Sequence record: OR620964.1
Direction: 5' to 3' (one strand)
DNA length: 64,000 nucleotides
Part shown: one piece after another, positions 1,280-28,475 of the stretch
How positions within the stretch are numbered: the first letter of the stretch is position 1
Layout of the letters: each line of letters starts with the position of its first letter
Notes under the pieces: model-generated
Databases searched by the model: none
What the model saw: the letters and a program-made list of their open reading frames with translations, nothing else
Told to the model about the DNA's origin: nothing
Program-made: the position numbers and the translations under genes

Positions 1280-2047
1280 ATGAACGTAGATAAAACAATG
1301 CCTTCAGGCAAGTGGGAATTTGATGAACCAGTAGCTGCCGTATTCGATAACATGCTGGCCAACTCGATTCCATCGTATGACCGTATGCGTGACCTGACGT
1401 TTCGCTTGGGTAAACGTTTCGTAACACCTGGTTCAACTATTGTTGATCTTGGTGCATCACTAGGCCGTGCTATTGAACCGTTCTGTGAGTATTTCGGTCC
1501 GTACATGTATATTCATGCGGCAGATAGACCTGAGCCAGACCGAGAGATAGGCAATCATTACAGCCTGTATGAAACAGCACCTGCAATGCGTGAGCGTCTT
1601 GCGAAGAATGACGTGTTGAATGCGGCAGATGCAAAACTTGAATCCGAATCTCTTGTGGACGTTGATACGTTTCGTTTTAGTGAGCAGGTTGAATGCTCAC
1701 TGATCCTGTCCGTGCTAACACTACAGTTTACGCCTATCGAACATCGCCAACATATTCTGGAAAAGGTCTATGACTCTCTCCAGACAGGTGGTGCATTCAT
1801 TCTTGTTGAAAAGGTTCTTGGCGACGATAACTATCTGGACAAGCTGTTGGTAGATACTTACTATCAGATGAAAGGTGGTAACGGGTACTCGCAAGAATCC
1901 ATTGCTACCAAGCGTAAGTCGCTAGAAGGTGTTCTGGTTCCTGTTAAGGCAGCGTGGAATGAAGAACTATTACGCAAGGCAGGATTTAGCCGCGTTGAAT
2001 GCTTCTACCGAGATCTTAACTTCGCTGGATGGATCGCGATCAAGTAA
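1280..2047 (+). CDS. cmoA: carboxy-S-adenosyl-L-methionine (Cx-SAM) synthase, CmoA family
   Basis: WEFDEPVAAVFDNMLANSIPSY, IVDLGASLG, LTLQF, GGAFILVEK, NGYSQESIATKRKSLEGVL and AGFSRVE..LNFAGWIAIK align motif by motif with E. coli CmoA ([52 protein letters not shown]), including the Arg of the KR motif. Confidence 0.93.
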   Translation: MNVDKTMPSGKWEFDEPVAAVFDNMLANSIPSYDRMRDLTFRLGKRFVTPGSTIVDLGASLGRAIEPFCEYFGPYMYIHAADRPEPDREIGNHYSLYETAPAMRERLAKNDVLNAADAKLESESLVDVDTFRFSEQVECSLILSVLTLQFTPIEHRQHILEKVYDSLQTGGAFILVEKVLGDDNYLDKLLVDTYYQMKGGNGYSQESIATKRKSLEGVLVPVKAAWNEELLRKAGFSRVECFYRDLNFAGWIAIK

Positions 2048-2054
2048 TGCATGT

Positions 2055-2074
2055 GGGCTGCCTTCGGGTTGCCC
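2055..2074 (+). other. C(UUCG)G tetraloop hairpin without U-tract between cmoA and the amide ligase
   Basis: GGGCTGCC-TTCG-GGTTGCCC followed by TATCTACT rather than a T run. Confidence 0.55.
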
Positions 2075-2099
2075 TATCTACTATATAAGGAGTATTATT

Positions 2100-2954
2100 G
2101 TGTCTAAGGCACTGGCGATTTCTAAAGTAATCAGACGCACATTGGTGAGCACGTTTAAGAACGCGAAAACAGAACGTCCGTTCGTGTTCCTGTCCAGCGG
2201 CGCTGATAGTAACTGTCTTTTGTTCGCTGCGCTTGAGGCAGGCAAGCAACCAGTTACACTATCATTTCATATGGAAGGTACTATTAGTCGTGACTTCCGT
2301 CAGGCGCAAGCAACTGCCAAACTGTTTAACGTACCGTTCATTGAAGTTGTATTACCTACCAACGTCGAGACACTCAAGAAAGAGTGCATACTATTAGCCA
2401 AGAAATACGGATGTCGTAGTAAGTCTGACTTCGAATGTGTCTGGCCTATGTACCACGCGTTCCGTGCTGTTGCGAAATATGCAAAGAAACACAAGATTGC
2501 TTCACCTACAATCTACACAGGTCATGCGGCTGATATATACTACGTTCTTTCCAAGAAAGGTAACATGCATTATAAAGATCGCCCAGACGATTATCGCAAT
2601 GAGCGCTTTGTAGATCCTAAACTATCACAGAGACACATACTGCCTTCGATTGCTTCTGACCTTGAAATTTCTAATGAAATACCATGGGTCGATAAGAAAA
2701 TCTTGAAATCATTCCAAGGTGCTTCTATCGCTGACGTCAATAAGCCTCGTCAGAAAGAGCCGTCACGTCTAGCCTTTGATAGTTATTTCTCCCAAACGAA
2801 AGTCTATCAACATACGAATTTCCAACTCGGTGATAGCGGCATTTCGAAACATTTTGAAGTATTGTTGTCAGATCCTGAATGGAATCCCGACAACAAGTTT
2901 CGTGCTGTCATCGGTGTGTACAACGAACTCTGCCGAAGACTCGGAGTGGCGTAA
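2100..2954 (+). CDS. asparagine-synthetase-like (N-type ATP pyrophosphatase) amide ligase lacking the glutaminase domain; CmoY-like candidate
   Basis: PP-loop VFLSSGADS, D...A...A..F.VP.IEV, and IYTGHAADIYY (cf. TGxGADE); 284 aa, synthetase domain only; GTG start at 2100 behind AAGGAG (the track start at 1929 overlaps cmoA). Confidence 0.82.
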   Translation: MSKALAISKVIRRTLVSTFKNAKTERPFVFLSSGADSNCLLFAALEAGKQPVTLSFHMEGTISRDFRQAQATAKLFNVPFIEVVLPTNVETLKKECILLAKKYGCRSKSDFECVWPMYHAFRAVAKYAKKHKIASPTIYTGHAADIYYVLSKKGNMHYKDRPDDYRNERFVDPKLSQRHILPSIASDLEISNEIPWVDKKILKSFQGASIADVNKPRQKEPSRLAFDSYFSQTKVYQHTNFQLGDSGISKHFEVLLSDPEWNPDNKFRAVIGVYNELCRRLGVA

Positions 2955-3526
2955 TGATTCGCGTATTTGATTCCGGCGCAGGAGGAGCATACGTATCGGA
3001 GTTGCTTACTGCGCACGGAGTACATAACAAACTAAGCATGTTCCCTAACATGTTCCCGTTTGGTACTAAGACAGCCGACCAGTTACTTAGCTTATTTCAT
3101 GATTATCGGAATAGTGTTACTGGTACTGTTTTCTGTGCTTGTAACACTATGAGTCTTGTGCTTAACTCCAATGGGTACGACTTTACCTCATGTGATGTTA
3201 TTCCTACATTTCCTAATCTGTCTCCTGATGCGCCAGTTTGCTACGGCACAAAGAATACAGTTTGTCTGGCTCAGATACTGTCACCTAACCTTAGAGTTCG
3301 TGCCGTGCCTAATCTTGTTTCTATGGCAGAAGATGTATATCAAGGTAGGGCTGATAGGAAAACAGCGCTGGCATTATGGGAACAAGAAGTTAGAGAAACA
3401 ATTCAACTAGGATCTACACACTTGTCATGGCTAGCCCATACTTTAGGTGTAGCTGGTGATCATGTTGAGCCGGACTATATGCGCTTATACGTAGAGCATC
3501 TGTCTGACGAAACAATAGGCATATAG
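2954..3526 (+). CDS. glutamate racemase (MurI)-like protein, second catalytic Cys replaced by Ser
   Basis: IRVFDSGAGG, PFGTKT, FCACNTMS and QLGSTHL (canonical LGCTH); ATG overlaps the ligase stop (TAATG); 190 aa. Confidence 0.85.
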   Translation: MIRVFDSGAGGAYVSELLTAHGVHNKLSMFPNMFPFGTKTADQLLSLFHDYRNSVTGTVFCACNTMSLVLNSNGYDFTSCDVIPTFPNLSPDAPVCYGTKNTVCLAQILSPNLRVRAVPNLVSMAEDVYQGRADRKTALALWEQEVRETIQLGSTHLSWLAHTLGVAGDHVEPDYMRLYVEHLSDETIGI

Positions 3527-5964: not shown

Positions 5965-6792
5965 ATGACGTACATTAGCCCAATGCGGTATCAAGGATGC
6001 AAGCGCTCTCTGGTGCCGGTTATCAAAGAACTCATGCCACAAGATTGTACTCGGATGATTGATGCATTTGGTGGCTCTGCTACTGTGGTGCTAAATATGG
6101 ATACCAAGCACCGCCTGTATAACGAGAGCAATTTCCATGTATTTAAAATCATCGAACTATTTGCCAGAACAGACCCGAAGAAAACACTGAGCAAAATACG
6201 CCGAGTGATAAAGCGATTTGATCTAACAACCGATAACGATGAGCAGTATTATGAATTCCGTAGTTATGCTAATCGTCGGTATGATCCATTGTTGTTTTAT
6301 ATTCTGTCCCGTCATGCTCACAGCAACATGATTCGTTTCAACGGTAATGATGGATTCAATGCTCCGTTTGGTAAGCGAAGCCTGATAGGTAAGATGGATG
6401 TTCTTGAGCGTGAGGTAGTTGAGTTTTATGATAGAATGCATAACGTGCAATTGTCTAATTCTCGATATGCAGAACTACTTAATCGCATAAGCCACCAGCT
6501 CGATTCTACTTTCATCTATCTTGATCCTCCTTACTTGGCCAGCGGTGCAAACATCTATGACTCTTGGTCTGAGGAATTGGATATCAAGATGATGGCCAAC
6601 CTTGATGCTTTAGATGCAAAGAATGTTAAGTGGATGATGAGTAACGTTCTTACACACCGGCATTTCGAAAACAAGCGACTGGCTCGTTGGGCTAAAAACT
6701 ATCGTCTTATTGACGTAGACAAAACGTATAGTCTTGCGAATGCACAACAAGATAGCCACTCAACCCGTGAAGTGATTATCGTTAACTACTGA
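5965..6792 (+). CDS. dam: Dam-family (D12 class) N6-adenine DNA methyltransferase
   Basis: PMRYQGCKRSL, IDAFGGSATV (motif I), FIYLDPPY (motif IV), WMMSN, REVIIVNY. Confidence 0.92.
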   Translation: MTYISPMRYQGCKRSLVPVIKELMPQDCTRMIDAFGGSATVVLNMDTKHRLYNESNFHVFKIIELFARTDPKKTLSKIRRVIKRFDLTTDNDEQYYEFRSYANRRYDPLLFYILSRHAHSNMIRFNGNDGFNAPFGKRSLIGKMDVLEREVVEFYDRMHNVQLSNSRYAELLNRISHQLDSTFIYLDPPYLASGANIYDSWSEELDIKMMANLDALDAKNVKWMMSNVLTHRHFENKRLARWAKNYRLIDVDKTYSLANAQQDSHSTREVIIVNY

Positions 6793-10850: not shown

Positions 10851-11948
10851 ATGTCTCATATTTTTGATTTACGTAATGACGACCACTTCTTTCAATACTC
10901 ACTGGACAATGTAGACTGTCAGTATATGGATCTGGTTAATGCTATTCTGACCGAAGGCACAAAAGAAGCTGATCCGAAACGCAGTGAAGATACTTGGACG
11001 ATGTTACCATCTATCTCTATGACGTTGCGCAATACAGCCATGGCCTTTCCAGTCCTACTATCTAAGCGTACCCGTTACGTGCCAGCTATTGATGAGACGT
11101 GCTGGTTCATGCGCGGTGAGACAAACATCGAGACTCTTAACTCTCGCATATGGGATGAATGGGCAGACGAGTCAGGTGATTGCGGTCCTATCTATGGTTA
11201 CATGTGGCGCCACTGGCCAGATGTAAAAGCATTCCAAGACTTCACTAAGCCATCTGCTGTTTGTCCGTCGGCCGATGCTATCCGTATTCGCAACGAGATT
11301 ATTCGTATGCGCGCCGCTGGATACAAAGAGACTCAGTTGGCTGATGGGCGAATCCTATTTGAAGGTGAAATTGATCAGTTGTTAAATGCACTGAATGCTT
11401 GTGTTGCGCATGACCGTTCTCGTCGTATTAAAGTTGAAGCATGGAATCCTGGGTACATCCATATGCAGGGCCTTCCTCCGTGTCACACTGGTTTTGAATT
11501 CAACGTAACCAAAACTACTGACTATGAGCGTAAGGCAATGGAAGCTATGGGCCATACTGCTTACGAGGATTCGTTACATCTTACTGCCACAATGAGGAGT
11601 CAAGATGTGGCACTTGGAAGAAGTTTTAACATTATTGGCTATACTACGATGCTCCACCTGTTCGCCAAGTATAGCAAGCTAAATATCGGTAGCTTTACGT
11701 TGAACACTTCTAACACGCATGTTTATGACCATCACCGTGAAGGTCTTGAGACACAGCGTAAGCAGTTCCAAGAAATTTTGGACGTTGTGCGGTCTACTGG
11801 TAAGCCTATGCAGTATCCTGTCCTGCATGTTCACGATGATATCATGAAGATGGAGCCAAAAGAAATGCTGGATAGCATTACCAAAGATCATTTTCTTGTT
11901 GAAGGCTATCTGTCTATGCCTGAGATCAAATTCCGCGTCACCAAATAG
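10851..11948 (+). CDS. thyA: thymidylate synthase (ThyA type) with insertions
   Basis: IWDEWAD, GPIYGYMWRHWP, DQL, SRRI...WNP, catalytic LPPCH, RSQD..LG..FNI, HVYDHH. Confidence 0.95.
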   Translation: MSHIFDLRNDDHFFQYSLDNVDCQYMDLVNAILTEGTKEADPKRSEDTWTMLPSISMTLRNTAMAFPVLLSKRTRYVPAIDETCWFMRGETNIETLNSRIWDEWADESGDCGPIYGYMWRHWPDVKAFQDFTKPSAVCPSADAIRIRNEIIRMRAAGYKETQLADGRILFEGEIDQLLNALNACVAHDRSRRIKVEAWNPGYIHMQGLPPCHTGFEFNVTKTTDYERKAMEAMGHTAYEDSLHLTATMRSQDVALGRSFNIIGYTTMLHLFAKYSKLNIGSFTLNTSNTHVYDHHREGLETQRKQFQEILDVVRSTGKPMQYPVLHVHDDIMKMEPKEMLDSITKDHFLVEGYLSMPEIKFRVTK

Positions 11949-14068: not shown

Positions 14069-14815
14069 ATGACAGATAAGCTAAAGAAAAAGGTGAAAGT
14101 TAAAGGGAAAGAAGAACTGGCGCCTAAGAAGAAAAAGTCGAAAGACAAGCCAGTCAATAAAGCTGTTGGTAAGCCTATTACTAGCATCAAGCAACTTAAA
14201 GGTGCTAAGTATAACCCACGGTTTATTACTGATACGCGACTCAAGTCGTTAGAAAGTTCTATCAGCTCTTTCGGCGATTTGTCAGGTGTTGTATTCAACA
14301 ATAACATTGATTCTGGTGTTCTTATCTCTGGCCACCAGCGTATTGCCTCCATTGCAAAGTGGAAGACACGAGTTGAAGTACAGAAAACGACTGATGCGCA
14401 TGGTACTGTTGGCGTTGGATTTATTCATGCCACCAATCCTAAGTCTGAAAAGACAATCAGTATCCCTTTGCGTATTGTTAACTGGTCAGACAGAAAAGCT
14501 GAGTATGCTGCTAACATCGCGGCAAATGCTCATGGTGGTGAATTCGATAACAGTAAGCTGGCTGCTCTGGTTGAGAAACTGGATATGGATAAAATGCCAA
14601 GCTCGTTAATCGGATTAGACCCTTTGCAACTTCGTGGCCTACGTCAACGCCTTGGTCGTGATGCAGAAGCAATCGAAGCTGCGGCTAATGCTAAGAAGGC
14701 ACCGTCTGGTAAGCAGAATGGATCTACCGGTAAGTTTAAAGAATATACAACTGATGACGTCGAGGCTGAATTACAGCATCGTTGCCCACGTTGTGACTTC
14801 CGGTTTAACTCGTAG
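14069..14815 (+). CDS. ParB/Srx-like domain protein with C-terminal CxxC
   Basis: LKGAKYNPR, SISSFGDLSGVVFN, LISGHQRI, ANIAANAHGGEFD, terminal HRCPRCDFRF. Confidence 0.8.
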   Translation: MTDKLKKKVKVKGKEELAPKKKKSKDKPVNKAVGKPITSIKQLKGAKYNPRFITDTRLKSLESSISSFGDLSGVVFNNNIDSGVLISGHQRIASIAKWKTRVEVQKTTDAHGTVGVGFIHATNPKSEKTISIPLRIVNWSDRKAEYAANIAANAHGGEFDNSKLAALVEKLDMDKMPSSLIGLDPLQLRGLRQRLGRDAEAIEAAANAKKAPSGKQNGSTGKFKEYTTDDVEAELQHRCPRCDFRFNS

Positions 14816-14824
14816 GATAATCGT

Positions 14825-16903
14825 ATGGTAATCAAACCACCTACAATGAAAGAGATCAACGCGCTGGAGAAACCTTGGCGCGGTATGAGCTTCTTTGCTG
14901 GATGCGGCGGCTCCAGTACAGGTCACAAGATGAGTGGCGTTAATATTCTGATTGCAAATGAGTTCGTAGACTCGGCGCGGTTATCATATGAAGCAAACCA
15001 TCCGACGACTAAAATGCTGCCGCAGGATATTCGCCGCTTAGACCCAGCTAAGATTTTGAAGTATCTGGGCCTTAAGAAAGGTGAATTGGATTTGCTTGAT
15101 GGTAGTCCTCCTTGCTTCACAGAAGAGACACTCATTCAGACACGTAGTGGCATGAAGTACATCAACCAAATAGTAGTTGATGACTTTGTTCTTACGCACA
15201 AGCAGCGCTATCGCCGTGTCGTTGAGCCTATGCGTCGCCAGTACACAGGACTAATGCATAAGATTGTTAGTTCTGTAAGTGAGAACAATGCTACACCTGA
15301 ACATCCGTACTATATTCGTCGTATGGAAAATGATGTGCTGTCTGAGCCACAGTGGGTAGATGCAAGAGACGTTCGTGTTGGCGATAAGGTAGCTATTCCT
15401 ACTAGCACACACGCGACTGCTGATCTATCTGAGTGCTCTCAACAGATTCGCCAGTGGGCACAGCATGATGAGTTCTGGTGGTTAGTAGGTCAGTGGGTAG
15501 CTAACGGTAGTATGTCTCGTTGTGGAACACACCGAGCTATTCGTTTTCGTACACACAGCTCCCGTGGTAATCAATTGCTTGAGCAGGCGCTCGACCTGCT
15601 GGAGCTAACATCTATTCAGACTGCGTACTGTGGCGGTAAGTATATAGAGCGCTTTGTTATGAATGAAGAACTGGCAACATTCTTCAAGCTGTTCCTAACA
15701 GATAGTGCTCAAGCCCGACAGATACCAGGCTTTGTTTTAGACTTACCTGACAGGTCACAGCGGCAATTTGTATTCGGCTATCAGTCTCGCTGCTATGAGT
15801 CTACTTTTGGTAAGGCGCTTGTCGTACAAACACGCAGTCTTCCTTTCATGACTGCTATGCGTCACCTAGTTGCTTCTGCGTTCAAGTGCCCGCTGTTTAG
15901 TTTCAATACGCAAGCAGCACCAGAAGAACTTCCTGTTAGTAACTTCACTTATCTACCTGAATCCGAGTGCGGCCAGTGGGTAAACCACCAAGCAGTATTC
16001 TTTATTCAGGAAGAAGATCGTGGTTTTATTCGCGATGCTGATGACTTACTTTGGGTTGATGTGCTGGCCAATACGCAATATGAATCTAGTGTGCAGGTAT
16101 ATAACTTTAGTGTATCACAGGATGAGACGTATGTTGCGACGAATACAGTCGTGCACAACTGTAAGGGGTTCTCTTCTGCTGGCGTTAAAGAGGAAGGCTG
16201 GGGACGGGAAGTAAAATATAGCGAGGATAAAGTCCAACACGTCGATGACCTGTTTGATGAGTTCTGCCGTATGCTTAGTGGTACAATGCCTAAAGTATTT
16301 ACGGCAGAGAATGTAAGTGGTCTGGTTAAAGGTGTGTCTCGTGGATTCTTCATTGAGATAATGAAAGAGTTTGATCGTATCGGATATAAAGTTCGAGCAC
16401 CTTTGATGAATGCTGCTTGGCTTGGCGTACCACAATCGAGAGAGCGTATTCTCTTTATGGGTGTGCGTAAGGATATACCGTTTGATGTGCCTGATGTTGA
16501 GGTTCAAGATACGATAGCCATTCTTGCAGATGCCTTGCCTCACATTGCTGCGTTTAAGGGAATCAGGAATGATATGATTACCTACATTCCTGCAATTAAC
16601 AGTCCGTGCAAGACAATAACAGCAACGGATAGTACGGCATATGAAACAGCACGTTTCAGTACCGCGGGCTTTATCGAAACTATGGAAGGCAAGCGCCGCA
16701 AGCTAACCATTGAAGAACTTAAAGTTATTTCTGGTATGCCTTCTGACTATAAGTTAGTTGGTACTTTCGAGCAACAATGGGAACGACTTGGTCGTGTCTG
16801 TGTTCCGCAGATGACACACGCTGCGTCTAAGGCACTTATCGAGCATGTGTTGATTCCTTATGCGAAGAAGCGTAAGAAGAAAGTTGGGGATATCTTCCGA
16901 TGA
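14825..16903 (+). CDS. C5-cytosine DNA methyltransferase-family enzyme with intein; predicted cytosine carboxymethyltransferase (CmoX-like)
   Basis: Motif I FFAGCGG, ANEF, motif IV GSPP|C (split by the intein), VI AENV, VIII PQSRER, IX R.LTIEELKVISGMP; motif X reads LGRVCVP instead of GNSV/GNAV (Arg codon 16793-16795). Confidence 0.88.
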   Translation: MVIKPPTMKEINALEKPWRGMSFFAGCGGSSTGHKMSGVNILIANEFVDSARLSYEANHPTTKMLPQDIRRLDPAKILKYLGLKKGELDLLDGSPPCFTEETLIQTRSGMKYINQIVVDDFVLTHKQRYRRVVEPMRRQYTGLMHKIVSSVSENNATPEHPYYIRRMENDVLSEPQWVDARDVRVGDKVAIPTSTHATADLSECSQQIRQWAQHDEFWWLVGQWVANGSMSRCGTHRAIRFRTHSSRGNQLLEQALDLLELTSIQTAYCGGKYIERFVMNEELATFFKLFLTDSAQARQIPGFVLDLPDRSQRQFVFGYQSRCYESTFGKALVVQTRSLPFMTAMRHLVASAFKCPLFSFNTQAAPEELPVSNFTYLPESECGQWVNHQAVFFIQEEDRGFIRDADDLLWVDVLANTQYESSVQVYNFSVSQDETYVATNTVVHNCKGFSSAGVKEEGWGREVKYSEDKVQHVDDLFDEFCRMLSGTMPKVFTAENVSGLVKGVSRGFFIEIMKEFDRIGYKVRAPLMNAAWLGVPQSRERILFMGVRKDIPFDVPDVEVQDTIAILADALPHIAAFKGIRNDMITYIPAINSPCKTITATDSTAYETARFSTAGFIETMEGKRRKLTIEELKVISGMPSDYKLVGTFEQQWERLGRVCVPQMTHAASKALIEHVLIPYAKKRKKKVGDIFR
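15113..16159 (+). mobile_element. intein (349 aa) with degenerate LAGLIDADG homing-endonuclease region
   Basis: Starts CFTEETLIQTRSG, block B TPEHPYY, block F VYNFSV, ends VVHN followed by +1 Cys; middle WWLVGQWVANGS and QFVFGYQSRC resemble eroded LAGLIDADG blocks. Confidence 0.93.
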
Positions 16904-26288: not shown

Positions 26289-27170
26289 ATGGCATCACCT
26301 AAAGATACAGGTAAGTCCGTTCGCTCTGCACATGCTGCTCCGGCCGCTCCAGGTGCTGTTGTTGTTCCTAAGAAATGTACTTCCCGGCAAGCACAGGCAG
26401 TATCCGTAGCATCGGTTGCCTACCAATCAGCATCTAATAATATTGCAGTGGGTCACGCTATGTGTCGACCTGTACGCATGACAGATATTGGACACGGCCA
26501 AGTTGGTGACAAGACGCTATCTGGCATAATCCAGTCGTCCTATCTAAACTTGCTGGACGCTAGCTCCAATCTGGATATCACATTTGCACAACTTGGTATG
26601 TATCCTACAGCTCCGTATTATACTCTGGTTATGAATATGGATGCAGTATCTGATGTTCCTGTGGCCAATCTTGAAGAGTATCCAGTTCTTAATGCTATCA
26701 TGAACATGAGCGCCGAACTTCGAGATCCTATGCCTCTGAAATATACAGTTTGCACCATGGGCCGTGCTGTTGTAAATGCAGTAGAGTGTTTGATCTACAA
26801 TGCAGAGACAGGCAGAGCCGAGTTCAATGAAATGGATTCTTCGGAAGATCTTGAATGCGCGGCACCGTCAAGTAATCAGATTATGGCTACGCATACAACA
26901 TTTAGTCATTCCTTACATTACATGGCTACTGCTAGTATCGCGCGCCTTAATGCAACTAACTACCGCGTAAATCGTATTCGCTCGGCACTTATCCCAAGCG
27001 GCCCTGTAGAAGCAGCAACGGATTCGAAAGCGCTTGGCCCTACCTGCAATTTACAGGAAGATATCTCACTGCGTGAGACTCTGGACAGCCTGGTAGCTAC
27101 TCAGGCACTATTGCATGAGAATATCACGATGTTAAACATCGAAATTCGCGATAACTATCTGTCTCTGTAG
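26289..27170 (+). CDS. hypothetical protein
   Basis: 293-aa ORF, AAGGA RBS. Confidence 0.8.
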   Translation: MASPKDTGKSVRSAHAAPAAPGAVVVPKKCTSRQAQAVSVASVAYQSASNNIAVGHAMCRPVRMTDIGHGQVGDKTLSGIIQSSYLNLLDASSNLDITFAQLGMYPTAPYYTLVMNMDAVSDVPVANLEEYPVLNAIMNMSAELRDPMPLKYTVCTMGRAVVNAVECLIYNAETGRAEFNEMDSSEDLECAAPSSNQIMATHTTFSHSLHYMATASIARLNATNYRVNRIRSALIPSGPVEAATDSKALGPTCNLQEDISLRETLDSLVATQALLHENITMLNIEIRDNYLSL

Positions 27171-27233
27171 TATCGACTGCATAGTATTGGCCTTTACTGG
27201 TATCTAATATAAACTTTATTTGTGGAATAGAAA

Positions 27234-28016
27234 ATGACTGAACCTAAAGTAAAACGTAATAACCGTGGTCGCTTTGAAAGTATTGCAGAAGCAAAAGCAC
27301 CAGTGGCTCAACAAGAGCAAGATAGTCTGGCTACCGCAGATCCAGCGCAAGATAGTCTAGACCATGCAGAGCCAGATCCAGCTATGCCTTCTCAAGCACA
27401 GCGCATGGTTGATTCCTGCCGTAATCTGACCCGAATCTGTATTGTTATCTCTGCCGCTCTGTATGACTGTGGTCTACTGCCTACCGATGATTTGTATGAA
27501 TCGTTGAAGGGTGAGTCAGATGTGTGCGAAGACGAAGATGCTGCACCATCACTCATGGCAGACGTATCGAATACAATCCTTAACTCGCTGCGTGAAGGTG
27601 CTACTGCATATAACTGCCGAGCAATGACTGTCATTGAAGGTAATGCTGTGCCCGCAATGAATTTCGCAGTGCTTATCTCAATGCTGTCCCGCCAACAAGA
27701 TCTGGAAACTGCATACGGCGAATCGTACAAAGAGAATCTCATCCAAAACATGCCAATGCCTCTAGTTGGCCAAGATATGGTACTTCGTTCGTTTGATGAG
27801 ATTCGTGACAATGTGGCGACTGCTGCCTACACCTTGTTCGGTGTTCAGGTCAATCCTGATTCTGTTGCTGATCAAGATTTCACTCCTCGCGAAAACGTAT
27901 CTGATGCCAATGAGAATGTGATTACCATTCTGGACACAACGGCAACTCTGCTTCGTACCGATATTATTCGTAACATCAATATGCACTTTGGTGTAGAGTG
28001 CCCAGGAGTCGTATGA
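27234..28016 (+). CDS. hypothetical acidic protein
   Basis: 260-aa ORF; translationally coupled to the chorismate mutase gene. Confidence 0.8.
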   Translation: MTEPKVKRNNRGRFESIAEAKAPVAQQEQDSLATADPAQDSLDHAEPDPAMPSQAQRMVDSCRNLTRICIVISAALYDCGLLPTDDLYESLKGESDVCEDEDAAPSLMADVSNTILNSLREGATAYNCRAMTVIEGNAVPAMNFAVLISMLSRQQDLETAYGESYKENLIQNMPMPLVGQDMVLRSFDEIRDNVATAAYTLFGVQVNPDSVADQDFTPRENVSDANENVITILDTTATLLRTDIIRNINMHFGVECPGVV

Positions 28017-28432
28017 GCAAGTTAGATGAACTGCGATCTTCCGTAGATATGCTTGATACAGGTCTGGCTCTTGCGCTAACGCGTGATTCTGATATGAATG
28101 AAGTGGATGAAGACATCTACTTTGGTCGTCTTGGTGCATTGTTCGAACGAGCCGTTGAACGTATCGAAGCTGCTGGCTATGGCTCTTCGAAAACTGTGAT
28201 GTGTATATCGTTGCTTATTCTTCGCTCTATCTATGTGGTTGAGATCATGGATGAGAAGAAGCGCCTTGGCATTGTTGCCTATCAGCCAGAACGTGAGCAA
28301 CAGATTCGAGATCGTCTAACAGCTATCCCTAATATTAGCCCTGCGGTAGTTGAGCTAATGATGCAGGTAGTTGAAGATATGCGTAACGGTCAGCTATTAG
28401 ATCCAGAAGGCTTTCGACCAAGTTTGAACTAA
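28013..28432 (+). CDS. aroQ: AroQ-class chorismate mutase with an about 46-aa insertion
   Basis: LDELRSSVDMLD; LLILRSIYVVEIMDEKKRLGIVAYQPERE; VVEDMRNGQ. By-eye register places R8, R71, K82, R94, E95 and Q127 on E. coli PheA CM residues R11, R28, K39, R51, E52 and Q88; AGGAG RBS. Confidence 0.8.
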   Translation: MSKLDELRSSVDMLDTGLALALTRDSDMNEVDEDIYFGRLGALFERAVERIEAAGYGSSKTVMCISLLILRSIYVVEIMDEKKRLGIVAYQPEREQQIRDRLTAIPNISPAVVELMMQVVEDMRNGQLLDPEGFRPSLN

Positions 28433-28438
28433 CAAATG

Positions 28439-28475
28439 AAAAAGGGGAGACGCCAATTAAGGTGCCTCCCCTTTT
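28439..28475. terminator. bidirectional terminator between the convergent arms
   Basis: AAAAAGGGGAGACGCC-AATTAA-GGTGCCTCCCCTTTT. Confidence 0.88.

Follow-up and report, generated by a model that had tools for sequence, protein, structure and literature searches.

A candidate AroQ-type chorismate mutase whose helix 1 contains an insertion of 46 residues, encoded by Yersinia phage fHe-Yen9-02, as a possible accessory source of prephenate for CmoA

In our study, the last 64 kb of the sequence record OR620964.1 (Yersinia phage fHe-Yen9-02, 248,678 bp) was analysed; this stretch of 64,000 nucleotides is called the window, and a window position equals the record position minus 184,678. The window was found to contain the gene fHeYen902_300, which encodes a candidate monofunctional chorismate mutase (CM) of the AroQ type. 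Our reading is that this protein would serve as an accessory source of prephenate for the phage enzymes CmoA and CmoX, with a probability of about 0.5. The relationship of the protein to the AroQ/CM_2 family is very probable, and the retention of mutase activity is moderately probable. This jumbo phage infects Y. enterocolitica O:9, and among its relatives are phages of Erwinia/Dickeya (Y3, Alexandra, Yoloswag, AD1). In GenBank, fHeYen902_300 is annotated as a 'hypothetical protein', and it closes a block of genes on the plus strand. The gene and its parts were located as follows.

28013..28432, plus strand: fHeYen902_300, AroQ/CM_2-like, candidate monofunctional chorismate mutase of 139 amino acids (Pfam CM_2, catalytic residues)
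28019..28066, plus strand: N-terminal half of helix 1, residues 3-18, KLDELRSSVDMLDTGL, bearing R8 (nodes 2-17 of a hidden Markov model (HMM), alignment to the N-termini of CMs in the PDB)
28067..28204, plus strand: insertion in helix 1, residues 19-64, 46 residues (MAFFT gap, scores of in-silico deletions)
28205..28393, plus strand: AroQ core, comprising the C-terminal half of helix 1 (R71, K82), the loop and helix 2 (Q91, R94, E95), and helix 3 (E121, D122, M123, Q127) (Pfam, MAFFT, and PDB alignments)

The native protein matched Pfam CM_2 (PF01817) with an E-value (E) of 8.7e-6 and 26.3 bits, and residues 64-118 were aligned to profile positions 12-70. The gathering score of CM_2 is 27, so that the native protein falls 0.7 bits short of it. 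Six NCBIfam CM models also matched (best PRK06285, E 9e-4), and the match in the PDB was 2gtv (E 0.72). Every library that gave any match (Pfam, NCBIfam, PDB) gave chorismate mutase, and no family of the PHROGs matched the protein. When residues 19-64 were removed in silico, the CM_2 score increased to 38.8 bits (E 1.1e-9), the match covered positions 1-72 of the 80 profile positions, and the alignment started from L7-R8. Deletions of equal length in other registers gave 33.7, 28.9, and 25.6 bits, respectively, and the C-terminal part alone gave 27.5 bits. For the first 58 residues by themselves, the profile search returned nothing relevant; the segment of residues 3-18, joined to residue 65, raised the CM_2 score by about 12 bits. 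Because the score climbs once residues 19-64 are removed, fHeYen902_300 is best read as an AroQ protein with a real insertion of 46 residues. The construct without residues 19-64 matched 17 NCBIfam models, 16 of which were CM-type or related models (best E 2.4e-8), the remaining one being isochorismate lyase. The lyase model (NF005475) gave an E of 0.054 whereas nine mutase models gave values from 2.4e-8 to 1e-4; the identity of a PchB-type isochorismate pyruvate lyase was rejected since the mutase models outscored the lyase model. In the PDB, seven of the eight top sequence matches of the construct were CMs (2d8d, E 0.006), and the alignments included 2d8d, 5j6f, 3nvt, 2gtv, and 6al9.

A second, independent profile was built only from PDB sequences and from sequences of the type of EcCM, the CM domain of E. 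coli PheA (PDB 1ecm); the phage protein was excluded from it, and it is less sensitive than the Pfam profile. With this profile, fHeYen902_300 was the sole significant match in the six-frame translation of the window (E 1e-6) and in the whole phage genome. The match was split into two pieces, residues 3-18 on nodes 2-17 and residues 66-104 on nodes 19-57, and these nodes are consecutive. Because the two pieces lie on adjacent nodes, the helix that carries R8 and the core that carries R71, K82, R94, and E95 can be understood as halves of one AroQ helix 1.

The residues R8, R71, K82, R94, E95, and Q127 were aligned with EcCM R11, R28, K39, R51, E52, and Q88, respectively, in both the MAFFT and the HMM alignments; the EcCM reference sequence was 100% identical to PDB 1ecm over residues 1-95. 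These six residues and their counterparts had been named in the first-pass annotation, and the MAFFT alignment reproduced them. The same annotation had described their local spacing as exact, which was correct for most but not for all of the intervals. R71 and K82 are separated by 11 residues, as are R28 and K39 of EcCM, and the 12 residues from K82 to R94/E95 equal those from K39 to R51/E52. The local motif E121-D122-x4-Q127 is also the same as E82-D83-x4-Q88 of EcCM. The distance from E95 to Q127, however, is 32 residues versus 36 for E52-Q88, the shortfall being located in the loop between helices 2 and 3. The distance from R8 to R71 is 63 residues versus 17 in EcCM, which leaves 46 extra residues. 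In a MAFFT alignment with 14 EcCM-like sequences, these appeared as a single gap of 46 columns over residues 19-64. The proposed insertion of about 46 residues in helix 1 was thus borne out by the spacing, by the alignment, and by the rise of the CM_2 score from 26.3 to 38.8 bits. It had further been proposed that the insertion hides the gene from profile searches. The native gene is found by Pfam (E 8.7e-6), and the part of the proposal that holds is that the insertion costs about 12.5 bits; the annotation as 'hypothetical' is explained by the score that is left just under the gathering score.

Two other active-site positions of EcCM were changed, D48 to Q91 and S84 to M123. The active-site residues of EcCM were identical at 6 of 8 positions, at an overall identity of about 24% (binomial P 0.0034). 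The pattern R-x10-K-x11-RE-x20-45-ED-x4-Q was found in 3 of 200,000 shuffles of fHeYen902_300, the N-terminal pattern [LIVM]R-x2-[LIV][DS]-x-[LIVM]D in 822 of 200,000, and both jointly in 0 of 200,000, where both patterns had been drawn up post hoc, after inspection of the sequence. Among the 312 stop-free segments of the window, only fHeYen902_300 contained the full catalytic pattern.

The insertion consists of an acidic stretch (DSDMNEVDED), a predicted amphipathic helix at residues 33-53, and a G/S-rich loop, and its net charge is -4. The hydrophobic moment of the helix at residues 33-53 was 0.39, which is the second highest among the five predicted helices (0.40 in helix 3). In the AlphaFold2 (AF2) models, helices were placed at about residues 3-23, 33-53, 59-85, 92-104, and 110-124, at a predicted local distance difference test (pLDDT) of only 54-63. 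In the alignment with PDB 2gtv, the engineered hinge loop of the monomeric MjCM and the natural insertion of the phage protein were found to share one junction in helix 1. An interruption of helix 1 at this site is compatible with catalysis because the engineered monomeric MjCM stays active. A continuous canonical helix 1 is unlikely in fHeYen902_300 because the predicted helices on either side extend beyond the junction. In AroQ dimers, R11 reaches the active site of the partner subunit. For the phage protein, our own topological inference is that a simple fold-back monomer is less likely than a swapped dimer whose chains would each complete the site of the other with R8. The reason is that a path of helix-loop-helix-loop-helix would set the first half of helix 1 parallel to its own second half, and an antiparallel arrangement is needed for the active site. 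The suggestions of the first-pass annotation that the insertion may alter the oligomer state or dock CmoA are speculative. An internal duplication of helix 1 was considered as the origin of the insertion and not adopted, the overlapping segments LALALTR and SLLILRS being too short to judge.

The prephenate-consuming enzyme that the first-pass annotation had placed in this phage is present in the window, and it is accompanied by the other members of a DNA carboxymethylation set. The following genes were found.

1280..2047, plus strand: fHeYen902_252, cmoA homologue, putative prephenate-consuming carboxy-S-adenosylmethionine synthase (TIGR00740, E 3.2e-42, under the equivalog cut-off)
1959..2954, plus strand: fHeYen902_253, candidate CmoY-like PP-loop ligase of the Asn-synthase/QueC type (phrog_26038, E 4e-68; QueC-like, E 8e-8)
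14069..14815, plus strand: ParB-like protein, directly upstream of cmoX (GenBank annotation)
14825..16903, plus strand: fHeYen902_275, CmoX-type DNA cytosine-C5 carboxymethyltransferase, split by an intein (DNA_methylase, E 4e-36; Intein/Hint matches)

The cmoA homologue lies upstream of fHeYen902_300, at a distance of 26 kb and on the same strand. The intein of fHeYen902_275 covers residues 97-445 (nucleotides 15113-16159, about 349 amino acids) and interrupts motif IV exactly at its catalytic Cys (GSPP/C...VVHN/CKGFS). The joined exteins matched the crystallised carboxymethyltransferase SpCmoX (8yf3) with E 1.9e-57, and the match to HaeIII had an E of 2.4e-19; the SPPC motif was aligned, and the carboxymethyl-binding R350 aligned with the Arg of LGRV. 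In GenBank, fHeYen902_275 is also called 'hypothetical'. The Pfam scan of the ParB-like protein gave no match. As annotated, fHeYen902_253 starts inside cmoA, and the two genes share 89 nucleotides (1959-2047); the true start of fHeYen902_253 is probably further downstream because the PHROG match opens only at residue 53.

A phage system of CmoA, CmoX, and CmoY for 5-carboxymethylcytosine hypermodification (Synechococcus phage S-B43) has been described together with an association of ParBc with CmoX, and prephenate availability was named there as needing investigation (PMC12783734). It is most likely that the CmoA of fHe-Yen9-02 serves the carboxymethylation of DNA across the genome and not the modification of tRNA. 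If the GpC specificity of SpCmoX (S-B43) is assumed, one genome copy would contain about 14,000 sites, or about 28,000 cytosines, each of which would require one prephenate. In bacteria, the level of carboxy-S-adenosylmethionine tracks the prephenate supply (PMC11245014). A feedback-free mutase would have an obvious use in this phage because carboxymethylation costs prephenate and the carboxymethyl donor follows its supply.

In the proposed mechanism, the core of fHeYen902_300 (the C-terminal half of helix 1, helix 2, and helix 3) would furnish the active site with R71, K82, Q91, R94, E95, and Q127, and the detached N-terminal helix (residues 3-23) would supply R8, the counterpart of R11, through a swapped dimer or through fold-back on its own chain. 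Host chorismate would be converted to free prephenate in a reaction that is expected to escape feedback by Phe and Tyr, since the protein carries no prephenate dehydratase, dehydrogenase, or regulatory domain. The phage CmoA would then convert prephenate and S-adenosylmethionine to carboxy-S-adenosylmethionine, which the CmoX-type enzyme would spend on cytosine carboxymethylation across the genome, and the CmoY-like ligase may elaborate the product. The mutase would act as a booster of the precursor supply, not as an obligatory part of the system. No papers that link a phage mutase to CmoA or to DNA modification were found in the literature.

Other genes of the window also touch on nucleotide modification. 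The gene at 2954-3526, just after the CmoY-like ligase, has a weak likeness to glutamate racemase (TIGR00067, E 1.7e-6), which hints that the amine ligated to carboxymethylcytosine could be a D-amino acid. A homologue of thymidylate synthase (10851-11948) contains 365 amino acids, about 100 more than the span of the Pfam profile, and a deoxycytidine monophosphate deaminase is encoded nearby (record positions 193154-193657); the two may form a second route of pyrimidine modification. A D12-class (Dam-like) N6-adenine DNA methyltransferase was found at 5965-6792 (Pfam E 8.7e-29), and the genome is probably modified on adenine as well as on cytosine.

A CM_2 gene was also found inside a cmo operon of a second lineage of jumbo phages, which is only distantly related. 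In the IMG/VR contig 3300036762_000065 (241.7 kb), an open reading frame (ORF) of 88 amino acids lies directly between cmoX and cmoA (locus L032, 9665-9931; protein P0123). It matched CM_2 with 32.0 bits, above the gathering score, and its name at JGI is chorismate mutase. The CmoA and CmoX of this contig were 51% and 37% identical to those of fHe-Yen9-02, respectively, and a homologous intein is present at the same site of cmoX. The order cmoX-CM_2-cmoA-cmoY recurred in nine contigs from several samples. The gene after cmoA, at the position that matches fHeYen902_253, gave an Asn_synthase match (E 1.8e-11). The whole operon of IMGVR_UViG_3300036762_000065 (L032 7359-12486) was found to contain the intein-bearing cmoX, CM_2, cmoA, the Asn-synthase-like cmoY, and a 2-oxoglutarate-Fe(II) oxygenase; the last gene suggests an extra oxidation step in the DNA hypermodification of that phage. 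No pairwise similarity was detected by BLASTP between the 88-residue protein and fHeYen902_300. The presence of two AroQ-family genes in two jumbo-phage lineages with cmoA and cmoX is meaningful as guilt by association because mutase genes are nearly absent from cultured phages and one of the two copies lies within the operon. The association is stronger evidence for a link of CmoA with the AroQ fold than for one with mutase chemistry because the operon-borne protein is not a clean catalytic match. Supply of prephenate to CmoA is the best available functional hypothesis for fHeYen902_300, with a chance that we put at even or slightly below. A more far-reaching scenario, in which an insertion at a hinge point rewired an AroQ mutase to a new quaternary topology (a single-chain site or a differently swapped dimer) and phages whose genomes carry 5-carboxymethylcytosine throughout recruited AroQ-fold proteins at least two times independently for securing or channelling prephenate for CmoA, is rather unlikely; under it, chorismate mutase would be a component of a DNA hypermodification pathway, on the supply side, that had gone unrecognised.

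The signals around fHeYen902_300 are as follows.

28004-28008, plus strand: AGGAG Shine-Dalgarno sequence of fHeYen902_300, 4 nucleotides 5' of the ATG (sequence inspection)
28013-28016, plus strand: ATGA overlap of the fHeYen902_300 start with the stop of the upstream fHeYen902_299 (sequence inspection)
28440..28475, both strands: bidirectional intrinsic terminator hairpin between convergent gene blocks (A-run 5', U-run 3')

The ATGA overlap suggests translational coupling of fHeYen902_299 and fHeYen902_300. The hairpin at 28440-28475 had an energy of -22.6 kcal/mol and a z-score of -4.92, none of 200 shuffles being equally stable, and it divides fHeYen902_300 from the convergent lipoprotein/structural block. 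The guanine-cytosine (GC) content of fHeYen902_300 was similar to that of the neighbouring genes. With its ribosome-binding site, coupled start, terminator, and neighbour-like GC content, fHeYen902_300 looks like a real gene. A misplaced start or an ORF on the wrong strand was rejected, as the antisense ORFs were shorter and without matches. The neighbours g294-g299 gave no informative family, except for a nucleoside triphosphate pyrophosphohydrolase at g294. In comparison with the Erwinia phage Y3 (L004 12356-14589), the three genes that immediately precede the convergent terminator in the window (26289-28432) were lineage-specific, and this region appears to be a hypervariable cargo slot that ends the plus-strand block. 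In phage Y3, the slot before the lipoprotein gene contains the unrelated gp072-074 in place of g298-g300; only g298 resembles Y3 gp073, weakly (E 4e-4).

Cultured phages otherwise have hardly any chorismate mutase genes. In tblastn searches for phage mutases, for which EcCM, a CM domain from Geobacillus, and the construct lacking the insertion served as queries, only records that resemble host DNA filed as phage were found. The INPHARED records OR849944.1, OR844993.1, OR849177.1, and AGRM01000002.1 are unannotated and contain host-type DAHP (3-deoxy-D-arabinoheptulosonate 7-phosphate) synthase/chorismate mutase or pheA genes; they look like bacterial DNA and would inflate any count of phage mutases. 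Up to 20 kb from cmoA, no CM-like ORF was detected in phage PaBG, Staphylococcus phage F1, or Aeromonas phage HJ05, and none turned up anywhere in Alcaligenes phage Afa-NA1. The independent profile detected no CM-like ORF at 62 further IMG/VR cmoA loci, within flanks of 10-20 kb. Relatives of fHeYen902_300 were found neither in IMG/VR nor, by tblastn, in INPHARED. A word-indexed search of 5.8 billion sequences added one V119I variant, and the Logan contigs that contain fHeYen902_300 were of the same phage (about 99% nucleotide identity). Conservation cannot be used to show selection because the protein is an ORFan, the other copies being strains that are about 99% identical.

Several observations weigh against the role of fHeYen902_300 as an accessory prephenate source, and three other explanations have to be considered with them. 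With regard to the fold, the AF2 models were poor, with a pLDDT of 54 from the single sequence and 63 with the EcCM-based alignment. In Foldseek searches with these models (both against the PDB, plus BFVD), no match fell below E 0.5; structures of CMs appeared only at E 1.8-4.5 (T. thermophilus CM 1.8), and for a model that was informed by EcCM, which makes this result partly circular. A narrow EcCM profile gave a weak match by hhalign (probability 1.4%, E 0.037); the EcCM word search from which that profile was made had returned mostly enterobacterial PheA fragments. The exhaustive phmmer search of 1.84 billion representatives found only fHeYen902_300 itself. This result and those of the fold search, as well as a native Pfam score under the gathering cut-off and adjacent genes that are likewise lineage-specific unknowns, would agree with a fast-evolving helical ORFan in the hypervariable slot, either non-functional or an unrelated small protein, whose AroQ likeness is a relic or a coincidence. 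We regard this as improbable. Three independent libraries put chorismate mutase as the only or top family, the gain of 12.5 bits was obtained only when the insertion was removed in the correct register, the full catalytic pattern occurred in 0-3 of 200,000 shuffles, and the ORF has a ribosome-binding site, a coupled start, and a terminator.

With regard to the chemistry, fHeYen902_300 contains Met in place of EcCM S84, and an insertion in the middle of helix 1 could upset the dimer and the placement of R8. The operon-borne 88-residue protein contains M at the position of R11 and H60 at that of E52; the register of R51/E52 is shifted, and the protein is too short to reach the position of Q88. 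CM domains are known to regulate DAHP synthases. An AroQ-fold protein that is no longer mainly a mutase might be a carrier of chorismate or prephenate, an activator of CmoA, a regulatory subunit, or a related pericyclic enzyme such as isochorismate pyruvate lyase. We consider such a function doubtful for fHeYen902_300, since all six key catalytic residues are kept, which a pure binder or regulator need not keep. It would be in line with the broken helix of the canonical dimer interface, with an operon-borne protein that was kept in nine contigs without several catalytic residues, and with the DAHP synthase-fused CM domains (5j6f, 3nvt) among the best PDB matches. The isochorismate-lyase model, however, lies far below the CM models (E 0.054 versus 2.4e-8), and full activity is retained by the engineered MjCM, whose loop lies at the same site of helix 1.

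With regard to the distribution, cmoA was found in 82 INPHARED records, and only one of them, fHe-Yen9-02, contained fHeYen902_300. About 45 close relatives (Erwinia/Dickeya jumbo phages, in which cmoA is 68-94% identical) are without the gene. The distance of the gene from cmoA is 26 kb and that from cmoX 11 kb, and its place is in the hypervariable slot, among uncharacterised neighbours. The test proposed in the first-pass annotation, whether all cmoA-bearing relatives carry the gene, therefore largely failed, in view of the single record among 82 and the unrelated genes in the slot of Y3. The proposed role is called accessory because the close relatives keep cmoA without a CM gene. An active mutase with another purpose would be supported by the same homology and catalytic residues, and also by a gene that is not beside cmoA and is missing from relatives that keep cmoA; it could be an auxiliary metabolic gene that boosts Phe/Tyr, or a drain that, while the phage takes over the cell, diverts chorismate from host products such as folate, quinones, siderophores, and tryptophan. 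CM genes of the rumen virome have been reported as auxiliary metabolic genes for aromatic amino acids, where CmoA was not mentioned (PMC10465536). For fHe-Yen9-02 we judge this purpose to be unlikely, and slightly more so than a non-mutase function. The phage has a clear prephenate sink in CmoA and CmoX, the second cmoA lineage puts a CM_2 gene in the cmo operon, and no further gene of the shikimate or aromatic pathway is annotated in the genome. The conversion of prephenate to Phe or Tyr requires the host PheA or TyrA, and these already contain mutase domains. A bare mutase would thus add little to the output of Phe/Tyr. Taken together, the proposal of a chorismate mutase that supplies CmoA is favoured by the AroQ homology, by the CmoX/CmoY/ParB set, and by the operon of the second lineage, and it is disfavoured by the distribution in relatives.

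The enzyme family is already known, and what is new is the insertion variant and the pathway context. Phage DNA carboxymethylation by CmoA and CmoX was described only in late 2025, and the source of prephenate, the stoichiometric co-substrate, was left open (PMC12783734). If our reading is true, a phage-encoded, feedback-free mutase would answer this question and open it to direct testing. Rarely has a virus been seen to tap the shikimate pathway to make modified DNA, and this would be such a case. Nature's large insertion at the position where MjCM was made monomeric is a useful natural experiment for a classic model of enzyme topology and domain swapping. The practical lesson is that one insertion can push a real enzyme homologue 0.7 bits below a curated Pfam cut-off, where it is called 'hypothetical'.

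Among known systems, the CmoA-CmoX-CmoY system of S-B43 resembles the set of the window in its CmoA, its CmoX-type methylase (SPPC and the R350 equivalent), its PP-loop ligase, and its ParB-like protein. The S-B43 system was described without a mutase, whereas the genes of fHe-Yen9-02, for which DNA modification is predicted, are dispersed over 27 kb and include a cmoX with an intein. The 88-residue protein of contig 3300036762_000065 is likewise a phage-encoded member of the CM_2 family in a jumbo phage with orthologous cmoX and cmoA. It lies inside the operon and is without the helix 1 insertion and without equivalents of R11, E52, and Q88, whereas fHeYen902_300 contains the insertion and these residues. 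With EcCM and the monofunctional AroQ-alpha mutases of T. thermophilus (2d8d) and M. jannaschii (MjCM), the phage protein shares the CM_2 profile, the catalytic equivalents, and the predicted positions of helices 1, 2, and 3; the loop motif 'PERE' of MjCM is also present in it. It differs from EcCM, to which it is about 24% identical, in the insertion of 46 residues in helix 1, in the changes of D48 to Q and S84 to M, and in a loop between helices 2 and 3 that is shorter by 4 residues. It is not fused to a dehydratase, a dehydrogenase, or a regulatory domain, and it is phage-encoded and without detectable orthologues. The hinge interruption of AroQ helix 1 was reportedly made by design in the Hilvert laboratory. 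In the monomeric MjCM (2gtv), as in fHeYen902_300, helix 1 is interrupted between the IDxxI/L and LLxxR segments, and a monomeric mCM was found to be active with a kcat of 3.2 per s (bioRxiv 10.64898/2026.04.11.717874). The engineered loop adds 8 residues in the alignment, whereas the natural insert of the phage protein adds 46 residues with a predicted amphipathic helix of its own.

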